A stretch of DNA of 64,000 nucleotides, taken from the sequence record MN871445.1; one strand, given 5' to 3'. Under the pieces are notes generated by a model. It ran no database searches. It was not told where the DNA came from and saw nothing but the letters and a program-made list of their open reading frames with translations. The translations under genes were made by a program, and so were the position numbers. Below are positions 3,999 to 49,206 of the stretch, in pieces; position 1 is the stretch's first letter; every line of letters starts with the position of its first letter.

Positions 3999-4613
3999 AT
4001 GTCTAAACTTACCAAAGAACAGTTATACGAGCAGATTCTATTTTTATCTAATGAAGATATCATCTTTGTCAGGAAAAAAGCAGATAGTCCCAAAGGCTTT
4101 CGTTTGTCGGTGATCTGCAATGATATCTTTGCCTATGCCTGCTCCGATTCCAAAGCTATCGATGATAGCCAGATACCGTTAATTCACCATCTGTATAAAA
4201 CGTATTCTTTTTATGGGGTGATTGCCTGGCTGGCATATGTCCGAAAACAAAAACCACTGAAAGTGCACATTACCGAGAATTACAAGCGGGCTTTCCGGGA
4301 GTTAAAGGAGCACAGATTTGCGCTGCCCGAAATCATCGGTGAATCTACTAAGTTAACCGATGAGCTTGACCTTTTATTATTGGCTGATGCTCTAGGTATC
4401 GTTGATTGGTGTATCGAAGAAGGGCAGTGCCCGATACGCCCTCAGTGGGGGCAATATGTATTGTCGAATGGACAAATAATCGACATGCTATTCTCTAAAG
4501 ACTATCGGGCCAGTATAAGAACTAAATCAGAAGTAACCGAGTATGTTTCAATCTATAAACAATCTGGGTTGCAGGCCTGTATCGATAAATTAAACTTGGA
4601 ACAAACATCATGA
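3999..4613 (+). CDS. Hypothetical protein
   Basis: 204-aa ORF, ATGA-coupled to the next gene. Confidence 0.7.
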   Translation: MSKLTKEQLYEQILFLSNEDIIFVRKKADSPKGFRLSVICNDIFAYACSDSKAIDDSQIPLIHHLYKTYSFYGVIAWLAYVRKQKPLKVHITENYKRAFRELKEHRFALPEIIGESTKLTDELDLLLLADALGIVDWCIEEGQCPIRPQWGQYVLSNGQIIDMLFSKDYRASIRTKSEVTEYVSIYKQSGLQACIDKLNLEQTS

Positions 4614-5404
4614 CCAAACAAGAATACATCGACCAGTACGTAGCATTGAATGGCCCCATCCCACCTCATTGTTCGGTTATTCCATCTCCGTTAGGGTGGC
4701 AAATAATCGATGATGATTGCCACGCAAACCTTGTGGTTTACCCGACTAAAGAAAGTATTGAATCATCTATATCTAAATCACTGCTTCCAGAGCACATAAC
4801 CCCGTTCTATCAATTCATGCATGATTATCGGGACACCATCGACTGGGTGTTGTGGTACAACGAAACTGACCCTAATACCACTACGCCATCTTACCACAAT
4901 AGTCGTCATTTGATTGGCGCTGCGTTTATTGCGCATTTATTGAGTGATGGTGACCCTAAATGTATCCAGGCCATGTTCATTCATGATTTTCAACATCCAA
5001 AAGCAGCGAGTGATTTAGATAATATTATCCATTCACTTAGTGTAGCAAAACAATGCGATTATCCTCACGAAATTGATGATGTATTAACGACATTGGTCTT
5101 CGGCACTCAATACAACCCTCAAGACCCATATCCCGCGGTTGAAGATCCGAAGATTGCCTTATGTCGAGATGCTGACCAAATCTACGCTACTATGATGTTT
5201 AATTTGGGGGTTTACTTGGGCCTCGAACATGAAGTAGGAGGTAAGTTGGGTTTGTCTGGGTCCGATTTTCTTCTGCGCAATATGAATTATGTCAGAAATA
5301 TCGGGGATAATCTGTATTTGCCTCAAAGCAAAGATCTACATAAACAATATCGGCAGAAATGCCTGAACGAACATCTCGTATTTTCTTCAATTTATATTAA
5401 CTAA
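4610..5404 (+). CDS. HD-domain metal-dependent phosphohydrolase
   Basis: YHNSRH...MFIHDFQH...CRDAD: the H, HD and D ligands of HD/PDEase folds. Confidence 0.7.
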   Translation: MTKQEYIDQYVALNGPIPPHCSVIPSPLGWQIIDDDCHANLVVYPTKESIESSISKSLLPEHITPFYQFMHDYRDTIDWVLWYNETDPNTTTPSYHNSRHLIGAAFIAHLLSDGDPKCIQAMFIHDFQHPKAASDLDNIIHSLSVAKQCDYPHEIDDVLTTLVFGTQYNPQDPYPAVEDPKIALCRDADQIYATMMFNLGVYLGLEHEVGGKLGLSGSDFLLRNMNYVRNIGDNLYLPQSKDLHKQYRQKCLNEHLVFSSIYIN

Positions 5405-5462
5405 TTTATCGCAGCGGGGATAGATATGAGTATAGTCATCAAGTAGGAAAACGTATAACAAC

Positions 5463-5495
5463 GGGAGGCTTCGGCCTCCCATTATTTTCGCTTTT
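5463..5495 (+). terminator. Intrinsic terminator
   Basis: GGGAGGC-TTCG-GCCTCCC followed by a T-rich tract. Confidence 0.85.
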
Positions 5496-5526
5496 TTATT
5501 TTGATTAAATAAAACAATTACACCCT

Positions 5527-5534
5527 TATATTAC
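5527..5534 (+). promoter_or_regulatory. phiKZ-type early promoter box TATATTAC
   Basis: Exact motif, intergenic, A-rich upstream, 44 nt before the ATG at 5578. Confidence 0.7.
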
Positions 5535-5577
5535 TTACGGGACTAAGTAAACCACCCCATAACTGAGGATTTTTAAA

Positions 5578-6039
5578 ATGGCAGATTGCAGCATTGGTCC
5601 AGTATCCACTCTCCCAGGGTCTATCCGTGCAGTTCCTGTAGGAACCGAGTGCGATGAACACCCAGGGGTATTGGCCGTAAAACGGGTTCAAGGCGAAACT
5701 GATTCTTTTGGGTGTGAGTATTTGGATATGTGTCAGGAGTGTTACGACAAATATAAGGAAGAAATGCGCAACGTGGATAACTCAGGCACTTGTGATTGGT
5801 GTAAGAAAAGTGCCGATCAAGTGTTTAACCACAGGGATATAGAAGAAGGGAGTTGTGGGCGGGTCTATCAAGTATGCCAAGCATGTATCGATGCCGAAAA
5901 GAAAGAATGGGCTGAAGAACGTGATTGCCTGGATGATGATGATGAGTGGTGGGATTCTCGGGACTTGGATGATGAATTAGGTCCAGAAGATTTTGAGGAC
6001 TTCGACGATGACCGGTATGCTGAGCGGCTCGGAGAATAA
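5578..6039 (+). CDS. Cys-rich putative zinc-binding protein with acidic tail
   Basis: CDEH, CQEC, CDWC and CQAC pairs; D/E-rich C-terminus. Confidence 0.65.
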   Translation: MADCSIGPVSTLPGSIRAVPVGTECDEHPGVLAVKRVQGETDSFGCEYLDMCQECYDKYKEEMRNVDNSGTCDWCKKSADQVFNHRDIEEGSCGRVYQVCQACIDAEKKEWAEERDCLDDDDEWWDSRDLDDELGPEDFEDFDDDRYAERLGE

Positions 6040-6042
6040 TAA

Positions 6043-6633
6043 ATGAACAATGATGTAATTTCACTGATTTTGAGTGTTAACGAACATATCGACGCACGTC
6101 GGTCAATTCAGAAACACAGTTCATTACTGGACAACAATCTGTCATTTGACGGTCAGTGGCCAGTGACGAAAGTGGACCGGGATAAGATGATAGAGACCAA
6201 CACAAGCACTACACTGTGGGTAGTGGTGCTTTCTGGTGAAAGGTTGCGGATATTATCTCCAACTGTCGCAGATGCCATGGTCGAATTAGAAACCAGGTAC
6301 CCCGAAATCCGTAGCCAAATTCCAGATTTTGATCTTGTTTCATTTGGTGAAAAAGCGCGGCGGTTTCCAGGACATGTAGCTCTGCATTATGGTTGCTATC
6401 CTCAACCTGAGTTAGATGCTGAGTTACTTGCAACATTGGGTTGGTTGCAATGCCCCGATTACCCGCAAGATAAACTCTACTTTGGATACCAAACCACCGA
6501 AGAGTTTATTGCGGGCCTCGCAGAAACGCGTGCATTAACCAACATTACAGTATACTCCGCTGGAGGTTGTCATCGGCATTGGTATGGCACCGATCTACCT
6601 ACAGTCGTCGATGGCTATATTAACCAGGAATAA
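6043..6633 (+). CDS. Hypothetical protein, family A copy 1
   Basis: Shares LRI.(S/A)PTV..AM..LE.RYP....QIP.FD with 7178..7762. Confidence 0.75.
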   Translation: MNNDVISLILSVNEHIDARRSIQKHSSLLDNNLSFDGQWPVTKVDRDKMIETNTSTTLWVVVLSGERLRILSPTVADAMVELETRYPEIRSQIPDFDLVSFGEKARRFPGHVALHYGCYPQPELDAELLATLGWLQCPDYPQDKLYFGYQTTEEFIAGLAETRALTNITVYSAGGCHRHWYGTDLPTVVDGYINQE

Positions 6634-6637
6634 AAAA

Positions 6638-7093
6638 ATGAGCGCACGTCTAAATTTTTATAGCATCCCCAAAAATAAGGTTCCTCAGAAGCAACTCGAG
6701 GCCCTAGTATTGGACCAGTGTGAATCCGATGTAGCAAAACATAGCAAGGCCACTTTTGTTGACCTCGTTATTCTCGAGGACGCAATGGATGAGTTGGATG
6801 ACACTTACATTGATTGGTACACCGGCCTTCACCCGTATGGCCAGGCCAGGCAAGTGATATCGGCATTCATGTCAGACAAAGGCATTACTGGTAGTATCTA
6901 TAATACCAGCATGGTTATGTCCAAGCAGTTAGTCACCGAATTGCTTGATTATGTTATCACTTCGCCGCTATGGGGCGTAGATAATGATTTTTATCTATAC
7001 CACGAAAAAGAAGGAATTGAACTGTTTTTACAACACATCGTAAATAAACATGACTTTGATGCCGCCTATTTCTTTTATGTCTACGGTAGGTAA
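6638..7093 (+). CDS. Hypothetical protein, family B copy 1
   Basis: Shares LDQCESD, IYNTSMVMSK.LV.ELL and HDFD..YFFY with 7769..8203. Confidence 0.8.
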   Translation: MSARLNFYSIPKNKVPQKQLEALVLDQCESDVAKHSKATFVDLVILEDAMDELDDTYIDWYTGLHPYGQARQVISAFMSDKGITGSIYNTSMVMSKQLVTELLDYVITSPLWGVDNDFYLYHEKEGIELFLQHIVNKHDFDAAYFFYVYGR

Positions 7094-7138
7094 CGGCATA
7101 TCTCCTGTCTCGTTAATTAACGAGACAGTTTTTGTTTT
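7094..7138. terminator. CGGCATA + perfect 24-bp palindrome + T tract
   Basis: CTGTCTCGTTAATTAACGAGACAG (7105-7128) followed by TTTTTGTTTT. Confidence 0.75.
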
Positions 7139-7177
7139 AATGTTTTATGACATAAACAAGTTTAAGGAGATACGAAA

Positions 7178-7762
7178 ATGAATGATTTAGTTGTTTGTGA
7201 GTTTGTTGTTGTCGTAAAACCGTATACTGATAACTACTACGACATTGATGAGCATGTTCAGATAATAACGTGGAATGAAGCGTGGGGTCGCAAATGGAAA
7301 GTTCCCCAGGAACATAAAGATAAAATGCTTGAATTAAACAGTGCCGTAGTGCTATTTATTAGCGCAGTTAATAGCCCAAAATTTCTACGAATTCATGCTC
7401 CAACCGTGAAGACGGCCATGGAATTGTTGGAAGAACGATATCCGAAAGTACATGCACAGATACCTTCTTTTGATGCGGATAAATTTGAATCTATCGGTGC
7501 AGCGTGTAAGGGGTCATCCAATTTGTCTTACTTTTTTATTCCAGAGGATAATGACGATGATAATATTCTGTGGCTCCTTCCTGATGACATGGATGAAGAT
7601 GATTATGTCGGTAATTTCCCCAACATTGGTGCATTTATTGCCGCAGTAAAAGAAAAAAGAAAGGTTCTATGCATTCATTGCTACCCCGACACTCCGGTAG
7701 GAAGTTGGTCCTATTATGGCTTCGATTTTAACGAGCTTATGAACCACGTTATTAAGGAATAA
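7178..7762 (+). CDS. Hypothetical protein, family A copy 2
   Basis: Paralog of 6043..6633. Confidence 0.75.
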   Translation: MNDLVVCEFVVVVKPYTDNYYDIDEHVQIITWNEAWGRKWKVPQEHKDKMLELNSAVVLFISAVNSPKFLRIHAPTVKTAMELLEERYPKVHAQIPSFDADKFESIGAACKGSSNLSYFFIPEDNDDDNILWLLPDDMDEDDYVGNFPNIGAFIAAVKEKRKVLCIHCYPDTPVGSWSYYGFDFNELMNHVIKE

Positions 7763-38112: not shown

Positions 38113-38865
38113 ATGTATAACAACCACGCTAACTACATCCCAACCATCACTTCTGCACACATTGCGCAGCGCGAGCAAATTGAAGCCATGGTGCTGGAAT
38201 TCCACAATGTATTCCAACAGGATATCAATCAACCCATCACATCAGAACGACTGTTTTACCGGGCCCGGCTGATTAATGAAGAAGCCTGGGTGGAAGGCAT
38301 TCCCGCCAATTGGAATGCTGACCTCGAAAAGATCCTGGATTCGATGGGCGATACGCTGTATGTGTTAGCTGGCACTCTGGTGACTTTCATCGATGCGGGT
38401 CGTACTGGACATATGACCGATATTGAAATTGAGGACCTGGGTAGTTCGGAAATCCCTAACTTCATTGCCGACCCGTTGGATGCGTTACACACTGCGCGTG
38501 AGACGGTTAATGTGTTGCGCCACTGCGCCACCGTAGCGGGAGAAAGTCGATCTGAGTGTTTTGATTCCTACGCAATAGATTCGATGTATGCTATCCAGTG
38601 GGCGCTAGAACAAATGGGTGTTGACCCAGTTGCGCTGGTCAGTGAAATCCATCGCAGTAACATGACCAAACTTTGGCCGGAAGACGCCGTGGTCGATAAT
38701 CCTGAGGTGGTGTACACCAGCGTAGGTAACGGCCTGGTTTTATGTAACCGCAAAAGCGATGGTAAAGTGATTAAATCACCTACCTATTCCAAAGCTGATC
38801 TGTCTCCATTCGTCGCTCAAGTGAAAGCCGGCCCGCACGGCAGCATCTACGGCGAACAAAAGTAA
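38113..38865 (+). CDS. MazG-like / PRA-PH family NTP pyrophosphohydrolase
   Basis: EFHNVF, RARLINEE, ILDSMGDTLYV, EIHRSNMTK, DGKVIKSPTY. Confidence 0.88.
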   Translation: MYNNHANYIPTITSAHIAQREQIEAMVLEFHNVFQQDINQPITSERLFYRARLINEEAWVEGIPANWNADLEKILDSMGDTLYVLAGTLVTFIDAGRTGHMTDIEIEDLGSSEIPNFIADPLDALHTARETVNVLRHCATVAGESRSECFDSYAIDSMYAIQWALEQMGVDPVALVSEIHRSNMTKLWPEDAVVDNPEVVYTSVGNGLVLCNRKSDGKVIKSPTYSKADLSPFVAQVKAGPHGSIYGEQK

Positions 38866-38928: not shown

Positions 38929-40187
38929 ATGTCTGAACCCATCACCGTCACCACCACTACCTATTGCAACCCTTCTTTAGTGGTGGGTGGTGAGGAACCC
39001 CTAACCGAAGCGGAGCAGGCCGATATTGACCGCTACACAAAAGCCGTACTAAATGGCGGAATTATTGGTGAAGAAAGCGAGGATACAATTAAAATTATTC
39101 CGTTCTCAGGAATAACCAAGATATATAAGTCCTCGGACGATTTTATTTGTGTAAGTTATTTGGGTGAAGGTAGGGCTTTTTACTTCGCTTCTCTCCGGGT
39201 GCGGGATGCGGTTTATACTTACATGGTAGATATGTTGAAACACTATCTATCGAGGCCTGCCTTTCTCCCGGTTTCTACCAGCACGAAAAAATACGAAATG
39301 GGAATTTAATTGCTTTAATGGGGGTGGTTGGTGGGTGATAACCTAACAAAACAACACTGGGGTAAAATCGACGTGACGTGGGGAAAACTACGGCATCAAA
39401 GTTCCCGGAATCTTCGTCGTATGTTAAACAAACCAAAAAAGGCATCCTGATGGCAATCAAAACACAAGAGGAATTACTCAATGAATTTATGGATCAAATC
39501 CTACATCAACGGTTCCTTGCCTTGCGTCAGGCAGAAACCAAAGAAGAAGCGGTCGACCAAATCATCATCGGCATCCTCTCGACCATCGACGGCGTCAGCG
39601 GTCAGTGGCCTGACCCCATCACCCTGGTGGTTGAACCTACACCCGAAGCCGAAATCGAAGAAATCCAAGCGGAAGGTCGTAGTTGGATAGAAGCACCAAC
39701 CCCAATCAACCTCGATTGTTATCTTCACGATCTTTACGGTGCCGAATTACGTAAACGTTTTAAATCTTAATAGGGAAGTCACCATATGTTTTTAAGCAAA
39801 GATACCATCAAAAATGTCCAGCATTTAGTCGAAGCAAATACCTGCACCATTGAGTCCGTGACGGTGGAAGCCATTTATAGTCAGCGTGGCGAAACTTACG
39901 TGAAGATGGCTATTGATGGCTCGGGTGCGGTTGCTGTATTTACGGTCAAGCCGGGTCAGAAATTGCATGACCACATACTGGACGCGGTAAGATGGAAATC
40001 GTATTACTTACTCAATGAAGTTTATGGTGGTCTAGAGTGTGACGACTCTGCTGAGAAAATCCTGGAGTTATGGCCCGCTGCCGATGGAAATGTTCGCGAA
40101 ATAAAAAGTCCGCTGAGTGCGCCTATCGAACAGATAGACGATGCACGATTCAAACAACTCCAGAAAAAGTTTAATAAACATTACTGA
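38929..40187 (+). CDS. Hypothetical proteins (38929..39309, ~39450..39770, 39786..40187)
   Basis: ORFs with SD sites. Confidence 0.65.
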
Positions 40188-40190
40188 TTG

Positions 40191-40244
40191 ACGGCATAGG
40201 AGGAGGCTTACGCCTCCTCCAGTTATGTTGTCTTTTTATTTTTT
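40191..40244. repeat. Bidirectional terminator element, copy 1
   Basis: ACGGCATAGGAGGAGGC-TTAC-GCCTCCTCCAGTTATGTTGTCTTTTTATTTT, nearly identical to 48307-48360. Confidence 0.9.
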
Positions 40245-40856
40245 GCGTTTAAACGCATAGGTACCAATGCCATCGCGACCCAAATCAGTTTCAATGGTAT
40301 TATGCTCCACCAAATCAAAACCTTCACCACCCATAAACCGAATAAGGCCGGCATGAGTGAAATACCAGATATGTTCATCTTTGCGGTAATGGATGGATTT
40401 AGTGATGTGTTCTGCATCAGTAAAAATAGGGATGGATACGAATACCCAATCTGTTGCTTGGGCAAGCGCAACATCAGGTTCATCGATGTGCTCTAACGCA
40501 TCCCAAAAGGTCAATGCGTCAATAGGGGATTGATAGAAATCGTGAAACTTATTCTGATCAGCTAACCAAGCGATACCTGCCGGATTAACATCAAACCCAA
40601 CGGCTCCTTCGCAGTTGTCTACGAATTGGCCCGCCCCGATACCCACATCACACACTGGACCGGACCAGTACTTCTTAACTAAAGCCACCCGGGCTTTAGT
40701 TAGGGCGTCGCCCATCGGAGTAGCTGCGCGTTCACGATAGCGTGCGAAGTATTCTGCATCATAAGGGCGTGCATCTTTGGGTACTGGATAATGTCCGATA
40801 CCCAGCTCAGGAAAGAAAGAAAGTTCGGCGTTGAGTAACTCAGAGACCTTGCGCAT
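40236..40856 (-). CDS. Class I SAM-dependent methyltransferase (small-molecule/sugar type)
   Basis: VCDVGIGAGQF (motif I), GFDVNP, DALTFWDALEHI; no DPPY/NPPY or PC motif. Confidence 0.88.
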   Translation of the reverse strand: MRKVSELLNAELSFFPELGIGHYPVPKDARPYDAEYFARYRERAATPMGDALTKARVALVKKYWSGPVCDVGIGAGQFVDNCEGAVGFDVNPAGIAWLADQNKFHDFYQSPIDALTFWDALEHIDEPDVALAQATDWVFVSIPIFTDAEHITKSIHYRKDEHIWYFTHAGLIRFMGGEGFDLVEHNTIETDLGRDGIGTYAFKRKK

Positions 40857-41730
40857 TTAACCACCCGTTAATTTTTCCAGTGACGTTACTGATGTATTTG
40901 TTGCACGCATGCTTCATTTCATAACACATACAGTACTTGTCAGGATAAACAAACAAGCAGTTGTGTAAGCTCATAATTCTTGGGTCGGTGATTTTAGTGT
41001 GATGATTACAACCACCGCAACCACCCCCTAAGAAAATAGTGGGCCGACGATAGGCAAAGGCAGCTTGAGATATTAAGCAAGGCCCAGTCACCACAATATC
41101 AGCGCGTTCCACTAAGGCCATCAATTCAGTGATTGATAGCTCCCCTTTATGTATCTTTAAATGTGCGAATGGTTCCACATCTGGAATCCACTCCGCACCC
41201 GGTTCCAAGTCGGCTACGCTGATACAGAAATATCCGCGAGCCTGCAGCGCTCTAGAAACCTCATCAACATGCTTATTGAGCGGCCCTCGTGATTGGTGGT
41301 GCCACTCTTTACGTTCGGTAGTCGGGCGTATCAGTGCAAGTTTCTTGATGTTGCCCGGAATGTATTTGTTGGGTAATTGAAAGTGAGGCATATCCAATGC
41401 TACAGGTTCCACGCCGAATTGGCGACGACCGGCAGCGAACACAGAACCATTCTCCAGATCTTTAATCCCATAAAAGATTTTCTTCGTGATAAGTTTCAGG
41501 TCACGGGGAACCTCTTCATATTTAACCTGCGTCCTGCTTTCATTTTTCTTTTGTGTACGCAGAGTAGTGTTCGCTCTAACAAAATGAACATTAGGGATGT
41601 CCTGATAGAATTCTGGGATAGGAGTTTGAATCCAGACCTCATTGCCGGACATTACTAGCCGCTTAATAAATGGGCGCTGAAGTAGTTGATCGCCGATGCC
41701 CTGCATTCCATTGATTAGGTATCTTGCCAT
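40840..41730 (-). CDS. GT-B fold glycosyltransferase, GT9 (heptosyltransferase)-like
   Basis: N-terminal QGIGDQL; C-terminal LSITELMALVERADIVVTG...AAFAYRRPTIFLGG. Confidence 0.72.
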   Translation of the reverse strand: MARYLINGMQGIGDQLLQRPFIKRLVMSGNEVWIQTPIPEFYQDIPNVHFVRANTTLRTQKKNESRTQVKYEEVPRDLKLITKKIFYGIKDLENGSVFAAGRRQFGVEPVALDMPHFQLPNKYIPGNIKKLALIRPTTERKEWHHQSRGPLNKHVDEVSRALQARGYFCISVADLEPGAEWIPDVEPFAHLKIHKGELSITELMALVERADIVVTGPCLISQAAFAYRRPTIFLGGGCGGCNHHTKITDPRIMSLHNCLFVYPDKYCMCYEMKHACNKYISNVTGKINGWLNAQGL

Positions 41731-41748
41731 GGTAATTACCCTCTATTG

Positions 41749-42321
41749 TTATAATCGAATACTCGAGGACCATAACTCATCCTCTAATGTATTAGTTTTA
41801 AATGTTTTCAATTCCGTATATCGAGAACAGTTAATGACTGACATAGTTCCAATGATGTCTGGGACTTGGTTAAAACAGCCATGCCATTTTTCGATATCGC
41901 TGTCTTTAGGATTCGAAAGGTCATCGATATGGGGTCCGTGCCAATGTAGCCCATTAGCCAGAGAACAATCATAACCCAATAACAATACTCTCTCAGCACC
42001 GAGATTGTGAGCCAAACAAATAGCGCGCATGCCTGAGTTGAATGGTCCTTTTGCGGGTATTGGCATGTACTGAATATCTGGGTAATCTTTTATTGTGGTT
42101 CTGATAGAAGTCCATTTCACCATCGTATTAGGTACCTCATCGTGATATTTGCGCCACCATGTTAAATCTCCGGCATAGATGTGGTCACAAGTAGGCACTT
42201 TACGCCAACTATTATTGACCGCGATAATCGGATAATTAGTTCGCATGATGAGATGGCAGTCCTCATCAGTGAGTGATGGCCCTGAGGCTACACAAATGAA
42301 CGTCTTTTTATCGAGTGGCAT
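41749..42321 (-). CDS. MptE/DUF115 (Maf/sialyltransferase-related) protein
   Basis: ICVASGPSL, IIAVNN, IYAGD, FNSG..AI.LA..LGAERVLLLGYDC, HWHG, INCS. Confidence 0.72.
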   Translation of the reverse strand: MPLDKKTFICVASGPSLTDEDCHLIMRTNYPIIAVNNSWRKVPTCDHIYAGDLTWWRKYHDEVPNTMVKWTSIRTTIKDYPDIQYMPIPAKGPFNSGMRAICLAHNLGAERVLLLGYDCSLANGLHWHGPHIDDLSNPKDSDIEKWHGCFNQVPDIIGTMSVINCSRYTELKTFKTNTLEDELWSSSIRL

Positions 42322-42391
42322 GAGATAAGCCTTACAGTAGTGGACGTTAAAACCTATATCATTTTTCCATTAAACAAAACAAACATGGAAC

Positions 42392-42408
42392 TATATTACT
42401 GATTGGAC
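42392..42408 (+). promoter_or_regulatory. Early promoter box TATATTAC(TGATTGGAC)
   Basis: Exact motif in the divergent intergenic region. Confidence 0.72.
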
Positions 42409-42438
42409 ATATACTGCGTATATCCGGAGGTATTTAAC

Positions 42439-43702
42439 ATGAGCGAAAATAACGTTGTTCCTTTTACTGGGAAGAAATTGATGTCCAATTACCCCGCAAC
42501 AACCATGAACAGTGAAACAACTGACCATATGGCCAGGCTGTCATTCAGCATGACTGCGATGCAATCGTCGTTACGCCGGAAGCCAAACGTACTTCAGTAC
42601 GATGATTGGGTAAAAACCATGATTGGTTCCACACAAATGGTTAGACTGGGTGTCCTTGACGTTCGCTTGCGTAACCGGTTCTTTGACGCATTCGAATCCG
42701 GTGGATTGACACTAACCCGATGGTTAAACGAGGCGCGGTATCTCAGTCAACTACCATTGTGCGATATCGTAGTGGATTATAGTCACTATGATGAATTTAA
42801 CGGTTGGGTTGATGTAGACCGACCAACAATGCGGTTTAATCTCGGTAAAGGGGTTTCTATTATCCAAGAATCTTTTTTGTTGGGGAAAGAATCAGAATAT
42901 CCGGAAACTGCACTTGAAGATTACCGTAAATCAAATGTAGGGTGTGTGGAGATTGATGATATCTGGGATTCATGTAATGCCGACCCGAGGGGCTCGATTA
43001 TTGAACCGCGGTTAGTAGAGCAACTAGCGGACTGCTTTTATCTGGATGCGCTGGCGTGTGGTGGTGGGTGGGAAGTAGAAAGAACGGAGAAAGAAACCAC
43101 GTTCTGTTTTTTGGAAGCCATCACCCCGAAGCACATCAAGCGCTGGACATTATCGTTTAACAACGAATACTACACTCTTTTCTTAACTGGGGATATTTAA
43201 AATGAACACTTCTAATTGGTCGGCTTACCTGCATGATGACCGTGTCGTGATTGAATCACCATCAGGATGCACATACGACATCCCAGCATCTGATACCAGG
43301 TATACGTTGTCATTAGTCGCCGGCGGGTACCTCTACCTCCTTACCACCAAACCCAGTTTCACCACACGGCATCTACTCGTGCCGGCAGGTAACCTTAGCA
43401 TTGAACTATTCCGGGACATGACTTATTTGCAGGGTGCGTTAAATCAGTACTTTACCCCTGATGAAGCCGAACTGTTTACCGGTGTTCAAACAAAACCCAA
43501 AAAGTACATGCGCCTGCCTAATAGCGGTACGCTTGTCTATTTGGTGGACATTTTATCTGTGAACAGATTGGTTCATGGTGACCACAACGGAACCGCGCTA
43601 CTTATTAAATACCCCATCGGTGAAATCATTATTGCCTGCGACACTATCGAAAACGCTGTCGCTGATGAACGTGCGCTGACAGAATATCTGCTTTCGTTGT
43701 AG
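42439..43702 (+). CDS. Two hypothetical proteins (42439..43200, 43202..43702)
   Basis: GGAGG SD at 42426; coupled. Confidence 0.7.
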
Positions 43703-43713
43703 TGGGGGCGTTT

Positions 43714-44157
43714 ATGCCAATTATGGTTTATGCTGGTTCGGTATTTGATGTACCCGCACAGACGGTCATCAATACGGTTAACTGTGTGGGGGTAATGGGA
43801 AAGGGGTTGGCTAAGGAATGTGCTATTCGTTTTCCAGAGATGGAATCAATCTATAAAGATAAATGTCGGCGTCGGGTGTTATCCCCAGGTAAGTTATACC
43901 TGTATACTGCCGGTACGCCGTGGATACTGAACTTCCCAACCAAAATACATTGGCGCAACCCTTCTCAGATAGAATGGATTGAATCTGGGTTAGCGACGTT
44001 ACGTAGGGTTTACCCACAAATGGGACTAACTTCGCTGAATGTTCCGCAGTTGGGTTGTGCTAACGGTGGGTTGGCATGGCCTGAGGTAAAAGACCTAATC
44101 TATCTATATCTAGATTTGCCTGATTTGCAAGTGAACATTTGTCTAAACAACCTTTAG
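43714..44157 (+). CDS. Stand-alone DarG-like macrodomain (ADP-ribosylhydrolase)
   Basis: VINTVNCVGVMGKGLA, ILNFPTKIHWRNPS, VPQLGCANGGLAW. Confidence 0.92.
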   Translation: MPIMVYAGSVFDVPAQTVINTVNCVGVMGKGLAKECAIRFPEMESIYKDKCRRRVLSPGKLYLYTAGTPWILNFPTKIHWRNPSQIEWIESGLATLRRVYPQMGLTSLNVPQLGCANGGLAWPEVKDLIYLYLDLPDLQVNICLNNL

Positions 44158-44165
44158 GGGCTGCA

Positions 44166-44726
44166 ATGAAAGAATATTTAGTTTACCGTGGAGAACATGG
44201 TTCTAAGGCAGTGCTGATGACACATCTGGGTTCGCTAACTTTTGTCGATGACCGCACTGTAGCTGAGCGTTACGCCAGGGTACCTAACCAACGGCAATAT
44301 TCCGGCCTCAAAGAGCCTAAACTCATCACCGCGAAGGTCACCATTAACCGACCTTTCATCAACACCCCTGATGATTCGTTTATCGAATTTAAAGCCATCC
44401 GGGCGCATTTAGGTCCAACCCACGCAATCAGAATCGCCCGTAAGTTTGCTGATAGTATCGTGGAGACGGATGCTTGGGCCGTATTAGCCAAGAAACGCCG
44501 AGTCAATACCTTGGATGAATATTTGGCGCTACCCGATGCGTCCACCCAGAAACTCTGTATGCAAGCATATCGGTATTTTGACGACCCTGAAGAAATAGAG
44601 GTGTTGGTGAAACATCATTTTGATGGGGCTATCTATCGAGGGTCTGGCGAAAGCATGGGCTGTGTTGAGTATCGTCCATTTAATCGAGACAGCATCATGG
44701 TGTTGGTAATATCTTCGGTGAGGTGA
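44166..44726 (+). CDS. Putative ADP-ribosyltransferase-fold protein (polyvalent-protein ART-like)
   Basis: VYRG, GSLTF....VAERYA, VTINRPF, FDGAIY, CVEYRPF; the longer frame (44139) overlaps the macrodomain gene. Confidence 0.6.
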   Translation: MKEYLVYRGEHGSKAVLMTHLGSLTFVDDRTVAERYARVPNQRQYSGLKEPKLITAKVTINRPFINTPDDSFIEFKAIRAHLGPTHAIRIARKFADSIVETDAWAVLAKKRRVNTLDEYLALPDASTQKLCMQAYRYFDDPEEIEVLVKHHFDGAIYRGSGESMGCVEYRPFNRDSIMVLVISSVR

Positions 44727-45900: not shown

Positions 45901-46020
45901 TTACTACCCTACGCTATAATGCGATAAAAAGAAAAGTCGGCCCATGAGCCAGACAGCCGTACGTCTTCAGGACGCTAAACACTCAATAATAAATAGTCTA
46001 AACCCATGAGGATTACAAAT

Positions 46021-47205
46021 ATGTCATATGAAAGTCATTTCCTATCAGAAGCAAAACTGGCCTGCGTTGCCAAAGCAGACCAAGAGCTGGTCTTGAAGAT
46101 GCTGAAACCCATTTCAGATGAGGGGCATTCTGGCGGCAGTATGAGCATTTTTATCCAGTGGTTGGAAGACTGGGCTAATAACCCACAACCCATCACAGAT
46201 AAACGCAGTATGCTCTACCCCGTACAGGAATCGGTCAAAGGTTTGCCCTACGAGGATTTGAAACGGATTGCCGGGTACGTTTATAAGACTTGCGCCTTTG
46301 AACCACTTACTCCATTGACTGGGGTAGATAGTGAGTGGATAGATCATGGAGATGGCTACTATCAAAATCGCCGTTATTCTAAAGTATTTAAAGAAGGGAA
46401 AGACGCCACCCCATATTGCATTGACCGCGTGGTTTGGTGCTACCCTTACAATGATTTCTCTGGTTGGGGTGGGTGTACCCGCGGGGGTGGTTTAAGCTCT
46501 AAAGATATTACCTTCCCGTACGATCCAGCGGCTCCAGAAAATGCTACGGAATATAAATATTTCTTAGCGGATGACTGGCGTGAAGAACTTCCCGTAGAGA
46601 TACCACCAAAAGCATGGCTAAAATGGCAGCGTCAACGGTACCATGCCGGTACTGACCTCACCACGGGGAAACTGCGCCTGGGCGTCGTATGTTTGGGTGA
46701 TGTACGCCTTAACGAAATAATCATTGCCTACGCTGCAGTTAAAACACACATTGAGGTTACAGAAGGCCTCACTGTGGAACGCGCAATTCGTAAGCTTGGG
46801 TGGGTATGGGACTGCGACGATGAAACCTGGTTGGATTGTGGTTGTACCACCATAAAAACTGCGGATCTCGCTCAAAAGGTTATTTATCTACTAACGACAG
46901 AGCCGAAAGATATCGCTGGTTATGCGGTGCAACAAACTAAGATCCTGAAACCGGGGAAAATGTATCAACGATGGTCTCACTATCGGGATGATTATTTTGG
47001 GTGGATGCCGAACTCGGATAAACCTACCCCCATCTATGTGGAAAATGATAGAATTATCACCGGCGATCATGATGACTATTTGTTCCAACAACGTCGCAAA
47101 TATGGCTATGCACACCCCAAACGTAAAGAGCATACGCTTTCATCAGAGAACATAATAGCATGTTCTGGTGGCCTACCACCACTGGATGCTGCCGACCCGG
47201 CATAA
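46021..47205 (+). CDS. Conserved phage hypothetical protein (GHSG...PLTPLTG...YQN.R motif)
   Basis: EGHSGGS, FEPLTPLTGVDSEW, YQNRRYSKVFK. Confidence 0.75.
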   Translation: MSYESHFLSEAKLACVAKADQELVLKMLKPISDEGHSGGSMSIFIQWLEDWANNPQPITDKRSMLYPVQESVKGLPYEDLKRIAGYVYKTCAFEPLTPLTGVDSEWIDHGDGYYQNRRYSKVFKEGKDATPYCIDRVVWCYPYNDFSGWGGCTRGGGLSSKDITFPYDPAAPENATEYKYFLADDWREELPVEIPPKAWLKWQRQRYHAGTDLTTGKLRLGVVCLGDVRLNEIIIAYAAVKTHIEVTEGLTVERAIRKLGWVWDCDDETWLDCGCTTIKTADLAQKVIYLLTTEPKDIAGYAVQQTKILKPGKMYQRWSHYRDDYFGWMPNSDKPTPIYVENDRIITGDHDDYLFQQRRKYGYAHPKRKEHTLSSENIIACSGGLPPLDAADPA

Positions 47206-48307: not shown

Positions 48308-48360
48308 CGGCATAGGAGGAGGCGAAAGCCTCCTCCAGTTATGTTGTCTTTTTTATTTTG
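48307..48360. repeat. Bidirectional terminator element, copy 2
   Basis: ACGGCATAGGAGGAGGC-GAAA-GCCTCCTCCAGTTATGTTGTCTTTTTTATTTT; differs from copy 1 only in the loop and T-run length. Confidence 0.9.
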
Positions 48361-49165
48361 GGAAAAAACCAATTACTTCCCGAACTTTTTCCCTGGACTT
48401 GGCCCCGATGCTACGTTGCACTTGAATCACCTCAAATTCCATGCCTTTGTATACTTCACGAGTCCCAACAGTATCAGACCCCGATACGATGACTTTATGG
48501 CCATCATTGGACAATTGACGCATACAGGACATAAGTTGTTCATGGTCTCTAAAAGAGAACCCACTAGATTCGTAGTTCGTGAAATTGGAAGTAGGATTCC
48601 ACGGGACGTAAGGTGGGTCACAATAAATAGTACTTCCCTGAGGGAATGTCTGTTTGGTCAAAATAGAATCAAACGCACCACATAAAAACCGAGTATCTGT
48701 TCTACGTATTTTATCGTGCATTTCTAATACTGCGGCTTTGGGGTAAAGCGGTTTGGTTCTACGGCCAAACGGAACATTAATTTCGTTTCGACGGTTATAC
48801 CGACATAACCCATTAAAGCCGTGTCGGTTTAAATACATGAACATGGCGGATTGAACAACCTTATCTTCGGTACGGGCATTGAACTTATCTTTAGTTTCCA
48901 GGTAAGTGTCAAGATTATTACCGGTGGCAAATAAAGGTTCGGCGCACGCCAGTAAATCATGCGGGTTCTCGTCGACAGTTTCATAGAAAGTGATTAAATC
49001 TTTATTGATGTCGGCTAGAATATAACTTGGATAATCCGTATTAAGAAATACCGCGGCACTCCCCACGAAAGGTTCTACCAGACAGGACACCTCACCAAAG
49101 TGGGGTTTTAATGCATAGACTATTTTGCTTTTACCGCCAGGCCATAATAACGGGGCTGTTTTCAT
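48353..49165 (-). CDS. dam: Dam-family (D12 class) DNA N6-adenine methyltransferase
   Basis: WPGGK, LVEPFVGSAAVF, ADIN.DLI, YLNRHGFNGLCRYN...NVPFG, IYCDPPY, FTNY. Confidence 0.95.
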   Translation of the reverse strand: MKTAPLLWPGGKSKIVYALKPHFGEVSCLVEPFVGSAAVFLNTDYPSYILADINKDLITFYETVDENPHDLLACAEPLFATGNNLDTYLETKDKFNARTEDKVVQSAMFMYLNRHGFNGLCRYNRRNEINVPFGRRTKPLYPKAAVLEMHDKIRRTDTRFLCGAFDSILTKQTFPQGSTIYCDPPYVPWNPTSNFTNYESSGFSFRDHEQLMSCMRQLSNDGHKVIVSGSDTVGTREVYKGMEFEVIQVQRSIGAKSREKVREVIGFFPK

Positions 49166-49191: not shown

Positions 49192-49206
49192 TATATTACT
49201 TTGGTG
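49192..49206 (+). promoter_or_regulatory. Early promoter box TATATTAC(TTTGGTG)
   Basis: Exact motif 27 nt from the dam start, divergent to it. Confidence 0.72.

Follow-up and report, generated by a model that had tools for sequence, protein, structure and literature searches.

The stretch of DNA analysed here (64,000 nucleotides, hereafter the window) comes from Serratia phage KpHz_2 (MN871445), a giant phage with Klebsiella pneumoniae as its recorded host. The nucleotide sequence of the window is 92.7% identical to that of Klebsiella phage vB_KvM-Eowyn and 87.6% identical to that of phage KpGz_1. A nuclear shell protein, PhuZ, and split RNA polymerases have been reported for the genus Eowynvirus (PMC13757433). 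KpHz_2 is a relative of this nucleus-forming genus, and therefore the label "phiKZ-like", given to it in an initial annotation of the window, is reasonable. The subject of this work is a cassette of three minus-strand open reading frames (ORFs), numbered in the direction of their transcription:

41749-42321, minus strand: gene 1, putative bare MptE-like (DUF115) single-domain protein of 190 residues, predicted to be soluble (sequence profiles, AlphaFold2 model).
40840-41730, minus strand: gene 2, predicted GT-B glycosyltransferase of a discrete clade near GT9, 296 residues (AlphaFold2 model, Foldseek, sequence profiles).
40236-40856, minus strand: gene 3, predicted class I S-adenosylmethionine (SAM)-dependent methyltransferase, 206 residues (Pfam, PHROG, sequence motif).

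According to the ORF table, genes 1 and 2 are separated by a gap of 18 nucleotides, and genes 2 and 3 overlap by 17 nucleotides, which agrees with the initial description of three coupled minus-strand genes amid plus-strand ORFs. The start of the second gene is preceded by the Shine-Dalgarno-like sequence AGAGGG. One of the flanking plus-strand ORFs ends at position 40187, and the next begins after position 42403.

The three genes form one co-conserved unit, as was initially supposed, and four independent lines of evidence support this. Co-occurrence was sampled in a phage collection, in the best 80 of at least 563 IMG/VR contigs with a relative of gene 2, and in 36 species-representative genome loci. 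Across the phage collection, genes 2 and 3 are found together (with 29 and 32 records, respectively), and their carriers include phages D3, PAJU2, PMG1, and Mulvp2, as well as a cyanophage. Nearly all of these records also have gene 1, which in addition occurs alone in P1-like and other phages. Of the 80 IMG/VR loci, 75 have the whole trio; in 74 of these 75, the genes adjoin one another, share a strand, and keep the same order. The genome loci, which belong to alpha-, beta-, and gamma-proteobacteria, contain the complete set in 32 of 36 cases; a few have a permuted gene order, and two are incomplete copies. In addition, the genes are joined in natural fusions, which connect gene 1 to gene 2 (P0243, E 1e-63; P0246, E 1e-38), an MptE-like domain to a gene-2-type glycosyltransferase and a canonical GT9 enzyme (P0244), and the glycosyltransferase to the methyltransferase in both orders (P0053 and P0258). 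Incomplete copies in three carriers indicate that the module also decays: in the genome loci L125 and L129, the gene 2 match covers only part of the protein, and gene 3 is absent from one of these loci and displaced in the other; Pseudomonas phage PACT201 contains partial matches to genes 2 and 3.

Two other proteins combine gene-2-like domains with different partners. P0251 (544 residues) has an N-terminal LicD (phospho-substituent transferase) domain followed by a gene-2-like glycosyltransferase, and in P0292 (1032 residues) an intein (Hint, LAGLIDADG) connects a canonical GT9 domain to one that resembles gene 2. The chromosome of Pantoea stewartii ATCC 8199 carries three complete copies of the cassette (L098, L102, and L106), which belong to two sequence variants and presumably lie in three prophages.

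The structure of the gene 2 protein was predicted by AlphaFold2 with a pLDDT of 95.4 and a pTM of 0.92. The confident GT-B model sustains the glycosyltransferase fold that was proposed for positions 40840-41730, and a Foldseek comparison to the PDB identified the heptosyltransferase TibC as the best match (4rb4/4rap, E 4e-10, TMq 0.65). There are 24 TibC chains among the matches listed, including the structure of the complex with adenosine diphosphate (ADP)-heptose. TibC is followed by WaaF (1psw, E 4e-8), a GT9 protein from Veillonella, and WaaC (2gt1/2h1h, E ~3e-6), and the matches range to an E-value of 1e-5. The model thus predicts that gene 2 has the GT-B fold and is of the GT9 or heptosyltransferase kind. 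The protein scores 13.1 bits against the Pfam GT9 profile (PF01075, E 0.058), which is under the 22-bit cut-off, and PF01075 has a precomputed match in a minority of the gene 2 homologues. PHROG 6804 matches gene 2 with an E-value of 3.8e-68. When a profile of the gene 2 family was searched against PDB sequences, WaaF was the sole solved protein reached (E 0.0017, in the nucleotide-binding half), and TibC was not reached. The profile search of all databases delineated a closed family that comprises 858 clusters (780 with E <= 1e-10) and does not grade into the very large GT9 family, and a look-up of the clusters of distant family members returned no named protein.

The invariant residues of the gene 2 family are Gly11, Gly13, and Asp14, Arg148 and Pro150, and Cys267, Cys269, His274, and Cys276. 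The first Rossmann strand of the model starts from residue 3 and is followed by a G-x-G-D sequence, which is kept in family members that are only about 30% identical, as is the C267-x-C269-x4-H274-x-C276 cluster in the loop before the last helix. Gene 2 shares with WaaC and WaaF the GT-B fold and the G-D motif after the first strand, and the family-invariant S-R-x-P sequence aligns with K-R-W-P of WaaF. It differs from these GT9 enzymes in its sub-threshold PF01075 score, its membership of a closed family, and the loss of the D-S-G-x-x-H stretch of WaaF, the sugar-side motif of GT9 enzymes: the corresponding region of the gene 2 family is a glycine-rich stretch without aspartate, serine, or histidine. 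Because S-R-x-P is aligned and D-S-G-x-x-H is lost, nucleotide binding by gene 2 is plausible, whereas the use of heptose is not established.

TibC is a cytoplasmic, iron-containing protein O-heptosyltransferase from enterotoxigenic Escherichia coli, which transfers heptose from ADP-heptose onto serines of a protein, and its C-lobe contains a four-cysteine iron finger that is needed for assembly and substrate recognition (PMC4358343). Gene 2 resembles TibC and AAH, of the bacterial autotransporter heptosyltransferase (BAHT) type, in its GT-B fold, and the cysteine-rich cluster of gene 2, in the C-lobe near the C-terminus, may be a metal site like that of TibC. However, the sequence identity of gene 2 to TibC is about 15%, and the protein is approximately 110 residues shorter (296 versus 406 residues), lacking the N-terminal beta-barrel and the beta-hairpin thumb through which TibC assembles into a dodecamer. 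The clusters occupy comparable positions, but that of gene 2 consists of three cysteines and a histidine within 10 residues, whereas the four cysteines of TibC are spread over about 30. Furthermore, no gene for an autotransporter substrate adjoins gene 2, and its neighbours are instead phage late, lysis, structural, or accessory genes.

The structural relatives of gene 2 bear on what the module may modify. WaaF and WaaC, which stand next after TibC in structure, are heptosyltransferases of lipopolysaccharide (LPS), and WaaF is the only profile match; the gene 2 protein is also basic, with an isoelectric point of 9.2. These properties would be in keeping with a substrate in the host envelope, for example the LPS inner core or a related lipid-linked glycan, to which the module would attach a sugar and a further group together with a capping methyl. 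The altered receptors on the infected or lysogenic cell would exclude other phages or reduce the loss of progeny on debris. Nevertheless, the best fold match, TibC, is not an LPS enzyme, and the cassette proteins have no membrane segment. Together with the genomic positions described below, this makes modification of the envelope an unlikely function, although it ranks first among the alternatives that we considered, before a non-virion protein and DNA.

The gene 1 protein matches the Pfam MptE-like profile (PF01973) with 30.1 bits (E 4.9e-7), under the gathering score of 34.6, with matches to both core motifs, and the MptE-like domain is precomputed in many of its homologues. It also matches PHROG 4603, named "alpha-2,3-sialyltransferase", with an E-value of 3.7e-52. 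The AlphaFold2 model, with a pLDDT of 92.2, is most similar among solved folds to HPPK (MptE) of M. jannaschii (8sd5, E 1.3e-5, TM-score 0.49), followed by thiamin pyrophosphokinases and then by the sialyltransferase ST6GALNAC2 (E 0.012); there is no Maf structure among the 50 best PDB fold matches. The fold of gene 1 is common to many uncharacterised viral proteins, and the family profile did not reach any PDB sequence. Therefore, of the initial designation "MptE/Maf-like", the shared MptE-like core can be retained, but the best solved folds are pyrophosphokinases and not sialyl- or nonulosonate transferases. In comparison with Maf proteins, gene 1 consists of the core domain only, without the flanking N- and C-terminal domains, and is found in phages rather than in a flagellin island. 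A folate context is likewise absent at the cassette. The model and profiles predict that gene 1 is a transferase or a diphosphokinase-type enzyme, and we consider the two chemistries about equally likely.

Gene 1 is 41% identical to PmgO of phage P1 and is homologous to HdmB of phage P7; PmgO and PmgP are both MptE-like. In P1 (positions 4956-7514), pmgO and pmgP are tandem paralogues within the late pmgL-pmgQ operon, which includes the phosphatase gene ppp; the RefSeq record of pmgQ reads "glycosyltransferase", and the protein has no Pfam match. Both pmgO and pmgP were dispensable in a CRISPR interference (CRISPRi) screen, pmgO for plaque formation (PMC10695390).

The nearest folds of gene 1 belong to enzymes that phosphorylate hydroxymethyl-type groups, which is compatible with the module hypermodifying phage DNA or a nucleotide precursor, by glycosylation and methylation, to protect it against restriction. 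Phage GT-B enzymes that glycosylate DNA are well established, and in some prophages a DNA methylase gene and a ParB-like nuclease gene are located just downstream of the cassette. However, the conserved unit comprises three genes only, and no gene for making a hydroxymethyl base travels with it. The enzymes closest to gene 2 in fold transfer heptose to protein or LPS and are not enzymes of DNA modification, and nucleus-forming phages wall off their DNA from cytoplasmic enzymes. Hypermodification of DNA is thus a highly improbable function of the cassette.

The identification of gene 3 as a SAM-dependent methyltransferase, made in the initial annotation, is supported by sequence profiles. The protein matches Pfam Methyltransf_23 with 41 bits (E 2.1e-10), above the gathering score of 27, and PHROG 6564 with an E-value of 5e-78. 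It contains the glycine-rich SAM motif at residues 69-77, so that both the profile threshold and the SAM-binding motif expected of class I SAM methyltransferases are present. Transmembrane segments were sought in all three cassette proteins and none was found; the three proteins are therefore predicted to be soluble. Searches of the individual sequences against PDB sequences did not return anything meaningful, and the cassette has no matches in NCBIfam or among the defence and counter-defence models of PADLOC. Very probably, the three soluble enzymes constitute a single pathway that builds a glycan.

The sequence comparisons identify the cassette as a mobile module that is widespread among proteobacterial phages, temperate as well as lytic, and that lies largely within operons of late or structural genes. 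It is not specific to phiKZ-like phages, the setting in which it was initially considered, since it is also found in D3, PAJU2, and lambdoid prophages. The carriers are phages of Proteobacteria plus one cyanophage. In PAJU2, the cassette is positioned between the head-closure and tail-terminator genes, and its gene 1 homologue was labelled "structural protein" by the depositor. The cassette is split in D3, with gene 1 placed after the major head gene and the other two genes after the head-closure gene. The cassette of Mulvp2 lies between the capsid and tail tube genes, and that of the T4-like cyanophage comes after the neck and sheath-stabiliser genes. In a prophage of Klebsiella variicola, the gene 2 protein of which has 64% identity to the window copy and is among its closest relatives, the cassette is inserted between Baseplate_J and a pair of wedge and tail-fibre genes. 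The commonest neighbours in lambdoid prophages are the antiterminator Q upstream and holin and endolysin genes downstream; a second site in these prophages is between Rz and the small terminase gene. An example from E. coli has the order Q, gene 1, gene 2, methyltransferase, holin, and PGAP names its genes 1 and 2 "hypothetical". This variant of the cassette is rare in E. coli, with nine occurrences in 5426 complete genomes. All of these insertion sites are transcribed only during lytic growth, together with the late genes.

The only genome match outside the proteobacteria is in an assembly titled Chryseobacterium sp. 18061 (L105), with a score close to those of the enterobacterial variant (for example L106 and L110); this may reflect contamination or a mislabelled assembly rather than a true Bacteroidota host. 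In Caulobacter phage CcrSC (L093), positions 4010-7635 contain an MptE-like gene immediately downstream of the gene for a large tail protein, then three genes for proteins of about 275 residues, and lastly a methyltransferase gene. The three genes were considered as relatives of gene 2 and rejected, as they have no detectable similarity to it. The CcrSC region may encode an analogous, longer pathway.

The distribution of the module bears on modification of the envelope in two ways. Its restriction to phages of Proteobacteria plus one cyanophage is in line with an envelope substrate, as is the occupation of classic moron sites in lambdoid prophages. However, the Q-holin and structural-operon sites, with their overlapping stop and start codons, would imply that the module is silent in the lysogen and expressed minutes before lysis, which would be too late for remodelling the LPS of the outer membrane. 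The module is also present in strictly lytic phages, namely the jumbo phages and the T4-like cyanophage. A role as a lysogenic-conversion moron was given a low rank, since lysogens do not express the insertion sites and lytic phages carry the module as well.

The context of the module instead favours proteins of the virion as the acceptor, because most carriers have it beside late or virion genes and because of the "structural protein" label in PAJU2. We tentatively propose, with somewhat less than even confidence, that the cassette encodes a pathway expressed late in infection, by which a short, methylated glycan is attached to proteins, most likely those of the virion. In this pathway, gene 2 would use an ADP-sugar or another nucleoside diphosphate (NDP)-sugar to glycosylate hydroxyl groups of a protein. 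The leading candidate for the donor is ADP-heptose, in view of the enzymes related to gene 2 in fold, the conserved motif on the nucleotide side, and the restriction of the module to hosts that make this compound, as every proteobacterial host does. Gene 1 would add a second group, which may be an acidic sugar activated by cytidine monophosphate (CMP), as in Maf- or sialyltransferase-like enzymes, or a diphosphate, as in MptE- or thiamin pyrophosphokinase-like enzymes. Gene 3 would then methylate the product using SAM and thus cap it. The acceptor would be one or more exposed virion proteins, and the glycan would alter the surface properties of the particle. The donor and acceptor, the sequence in which the reactions proceed, the time of expression in KpHz_2, and the biological benefit are inferred.

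Several observations weigh against the modification of virion proteins. No acceptor has been identified, and the module, which is portable among phages with unrelated virion proteins, does not keep to any one structural neighbour; it is therefore difficult to envisage one particular virion protein as its target. In KpHz_2, the genes around the cassette are accessory and of counter-defence type (Macro domain and Tad3). Gene 2 has neither the N-terminal beta-barrel and thumb of TibC nor the D-S-G-x-x-H motif of WaaF, and the best folds of gene 1 are kinases and not glycosyltransferases. Moreover, P1 does not need pmgO for plaque formation in the CRISPRi screen (PMC10695390). A more specific form of the proposal, in which a phage-borne protein O-glycosylation system draws on precursors of the host LPS core (ADP-heptose and possibly a CMP-activated acidic sugar) to build a short, methyl-capped virion glycan, is less probable still.

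The cassette of KpHz_2 is delimited by the following elements:

40190-40232, both strands: hairpin flanked by the two convergent stop codons (positions 40187 and 40236), identified by folding energy.
42322-42391, minus strand: upstream spacer of the cassette, near-invariant in the alignment of KpHz_2, Eowyn, and KpGz_1.
42392-42399, plus strand: TATATTAC motif of the neighbouring plus-strand gene (ATG at 42440), a boundary mark outside the cassette, identified by string search.

The hairpin has a folding energy of -29.1 kcal/mol on the plus strand (z -6.3) and -24.4 kcal/mol on the minus strand (z -5.9), and is followed by a run of uridines on the plus strand only. It is therefore a classical intrinsic terminator for the plus strand. 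Of the bidirectional terminator described initially, the hairpin is stable in both directions, but a terminator is indicated in only one.

The spacer upstream of gene 1 is near-invariant among the three phages, although the synonymous sites of gene 2 differ by 0.23-0.53. A search for a sigma-70-like site at positions 42322-42400 found none, and no promoter of the cassette was identified. The initial annotation had interpreted TATATTAC as a divergent promoter. There are 10 copies of the motif in the window, compared with 3.2 expected in either orientation; all 10 are on the plus strand, and a search for a minus-strand copy found none. The motif is not a divergent promoter, because of this strand distribution and because the copy at 42392-42399 faces the downstream plus-strand gene. 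The strand bias is consistent with a strand-specific, promoter-like element of the plus-strand gene blocks. The "early region" in which the cassette was initially placed is an inference from this motif and not an observation.

The other clear minus-strand gene of the window encodes a D12-class Dam DNA methylase (48353-49165). Its start is a few tens of bases from the plus-strand TATATTAC copy at 49192-49199, which is the same layout as at the cassette. The divergent spacers of the cassette and of the Dam gene are compact and similar-looking; a minus-strand motif common to both was not established.

In KpHz_2, the cassette is counter-oriented among small plus-strand genes in an accessory region and not among structural genes. 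Its neighbours with recognisable domains include:

38113-38865, plus strand: PRA-PH/MazG-like pyrophosphohydrolase-domain protein (E 5e-9).
43702-44157, plus strand: Macro-domain protein (E 1.6e-8).
46006-47205, plus strand: Tad3 (type I Thoeris inhibitor)-domain protein of 399 residues, the domain covering the N-terminal 147 residues (Pfam, E 6.7e-27).

The Tad3-domain gene, which is close to the cassette, is likely a counter-defence gene as judged from its domain. The predicted Macro, MazG-like, Tad3, and Dam genes lend the neighbourhood an accessory or counter-defence character. These neighbours fit a module that modifies a host protein or a non-structural phage protein to aid host takeover or counter defence systems, where the attached glycan would inactivate or shield its target. 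A target common to the hosts would suit the portability of the module across unrelated phages, and the best fold relative of gene 2, TibC, glycosylates a bacterial protein. Nevertheless, the defence and counter-defence models of PADLOC have no match in the cassette, most phages carry it in late operons rather than in early anti-defence islands, and there is no known candidate target. We consider such a function improbable, less so than the modification of DNA.

The copy in KpHz_2 is better conserved than the flanking genes in this stretch. The nucleotide identity of the cassette is 94-99.8% to Eowyn and about 87-91% to KpGz_1, whereas the downstream plus-strand genes (window positions 42300-44200) have 76.6-76.7% DNA identity to Eowyn and KpGz_1. 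The ratio of non-synonymous to synonymous substitutions (dN/dS) is 0.04-0.06 across KpHz_2, Eowyn, and KpGz_1, which indicates strong purifying selection on the cassette genes. The closest relatives of the jumbo-phage copy are proteins of enterobacterial prophages, with 61-66% identity, and a search for gene 2 in the phage collection found no jumbo phage beyond three Eowynvirus-like genomes. Therefore, capture from a temperate enterobacterial phage is the simplest history of the cassette.

The folds of the cassette proteins are of known kinds, but their assembly does not match any characterised family. The cassette stands apart because gene 2 is below the Pfam GT9 threshold and in a closed family of 858 clusters, the accessory domains and substrate gene of the BAHT systems are missing, and the architecture of Maf is absent. 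The initial view that the system was undescribed holds, as a search of the literature found no paper characterising the cassette. The closest functional parallel to the proposed glycosylation of virion proteins is in mycobacteriophages, for which such decoration is documented (Freeman et al. 2023, Cell Host Microbe, cited in PMC12801897). Freeman et al. reportedly described that phage glycosyltransferases encoded beside structural genes, some of them with methyltransferases, decorate capsid and tail-tube proteins. The hosts of those phages are actinobacterial. A literature search for virion glycosylation in phages of Gram-negative bacteria found no case, and we know of no documented example.

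If the virions are decorated by the products of the cassette, this would bear on the recognition of phage particles by hosts and immune systems, which is relevant to therapeutic phages of Klebsiella and Pseudomonas. If a glycan derived from host precursors is attached to the virion, the cassette would be the first system that glycosylates the virions of phages infecting Gram-negative bacteria, and the first case of protein heptosylation outside the autotransporter adhesins. It would also provide a function for pmgO and pmgP of P1 and for orf7, orf12, and orf13 of D3.

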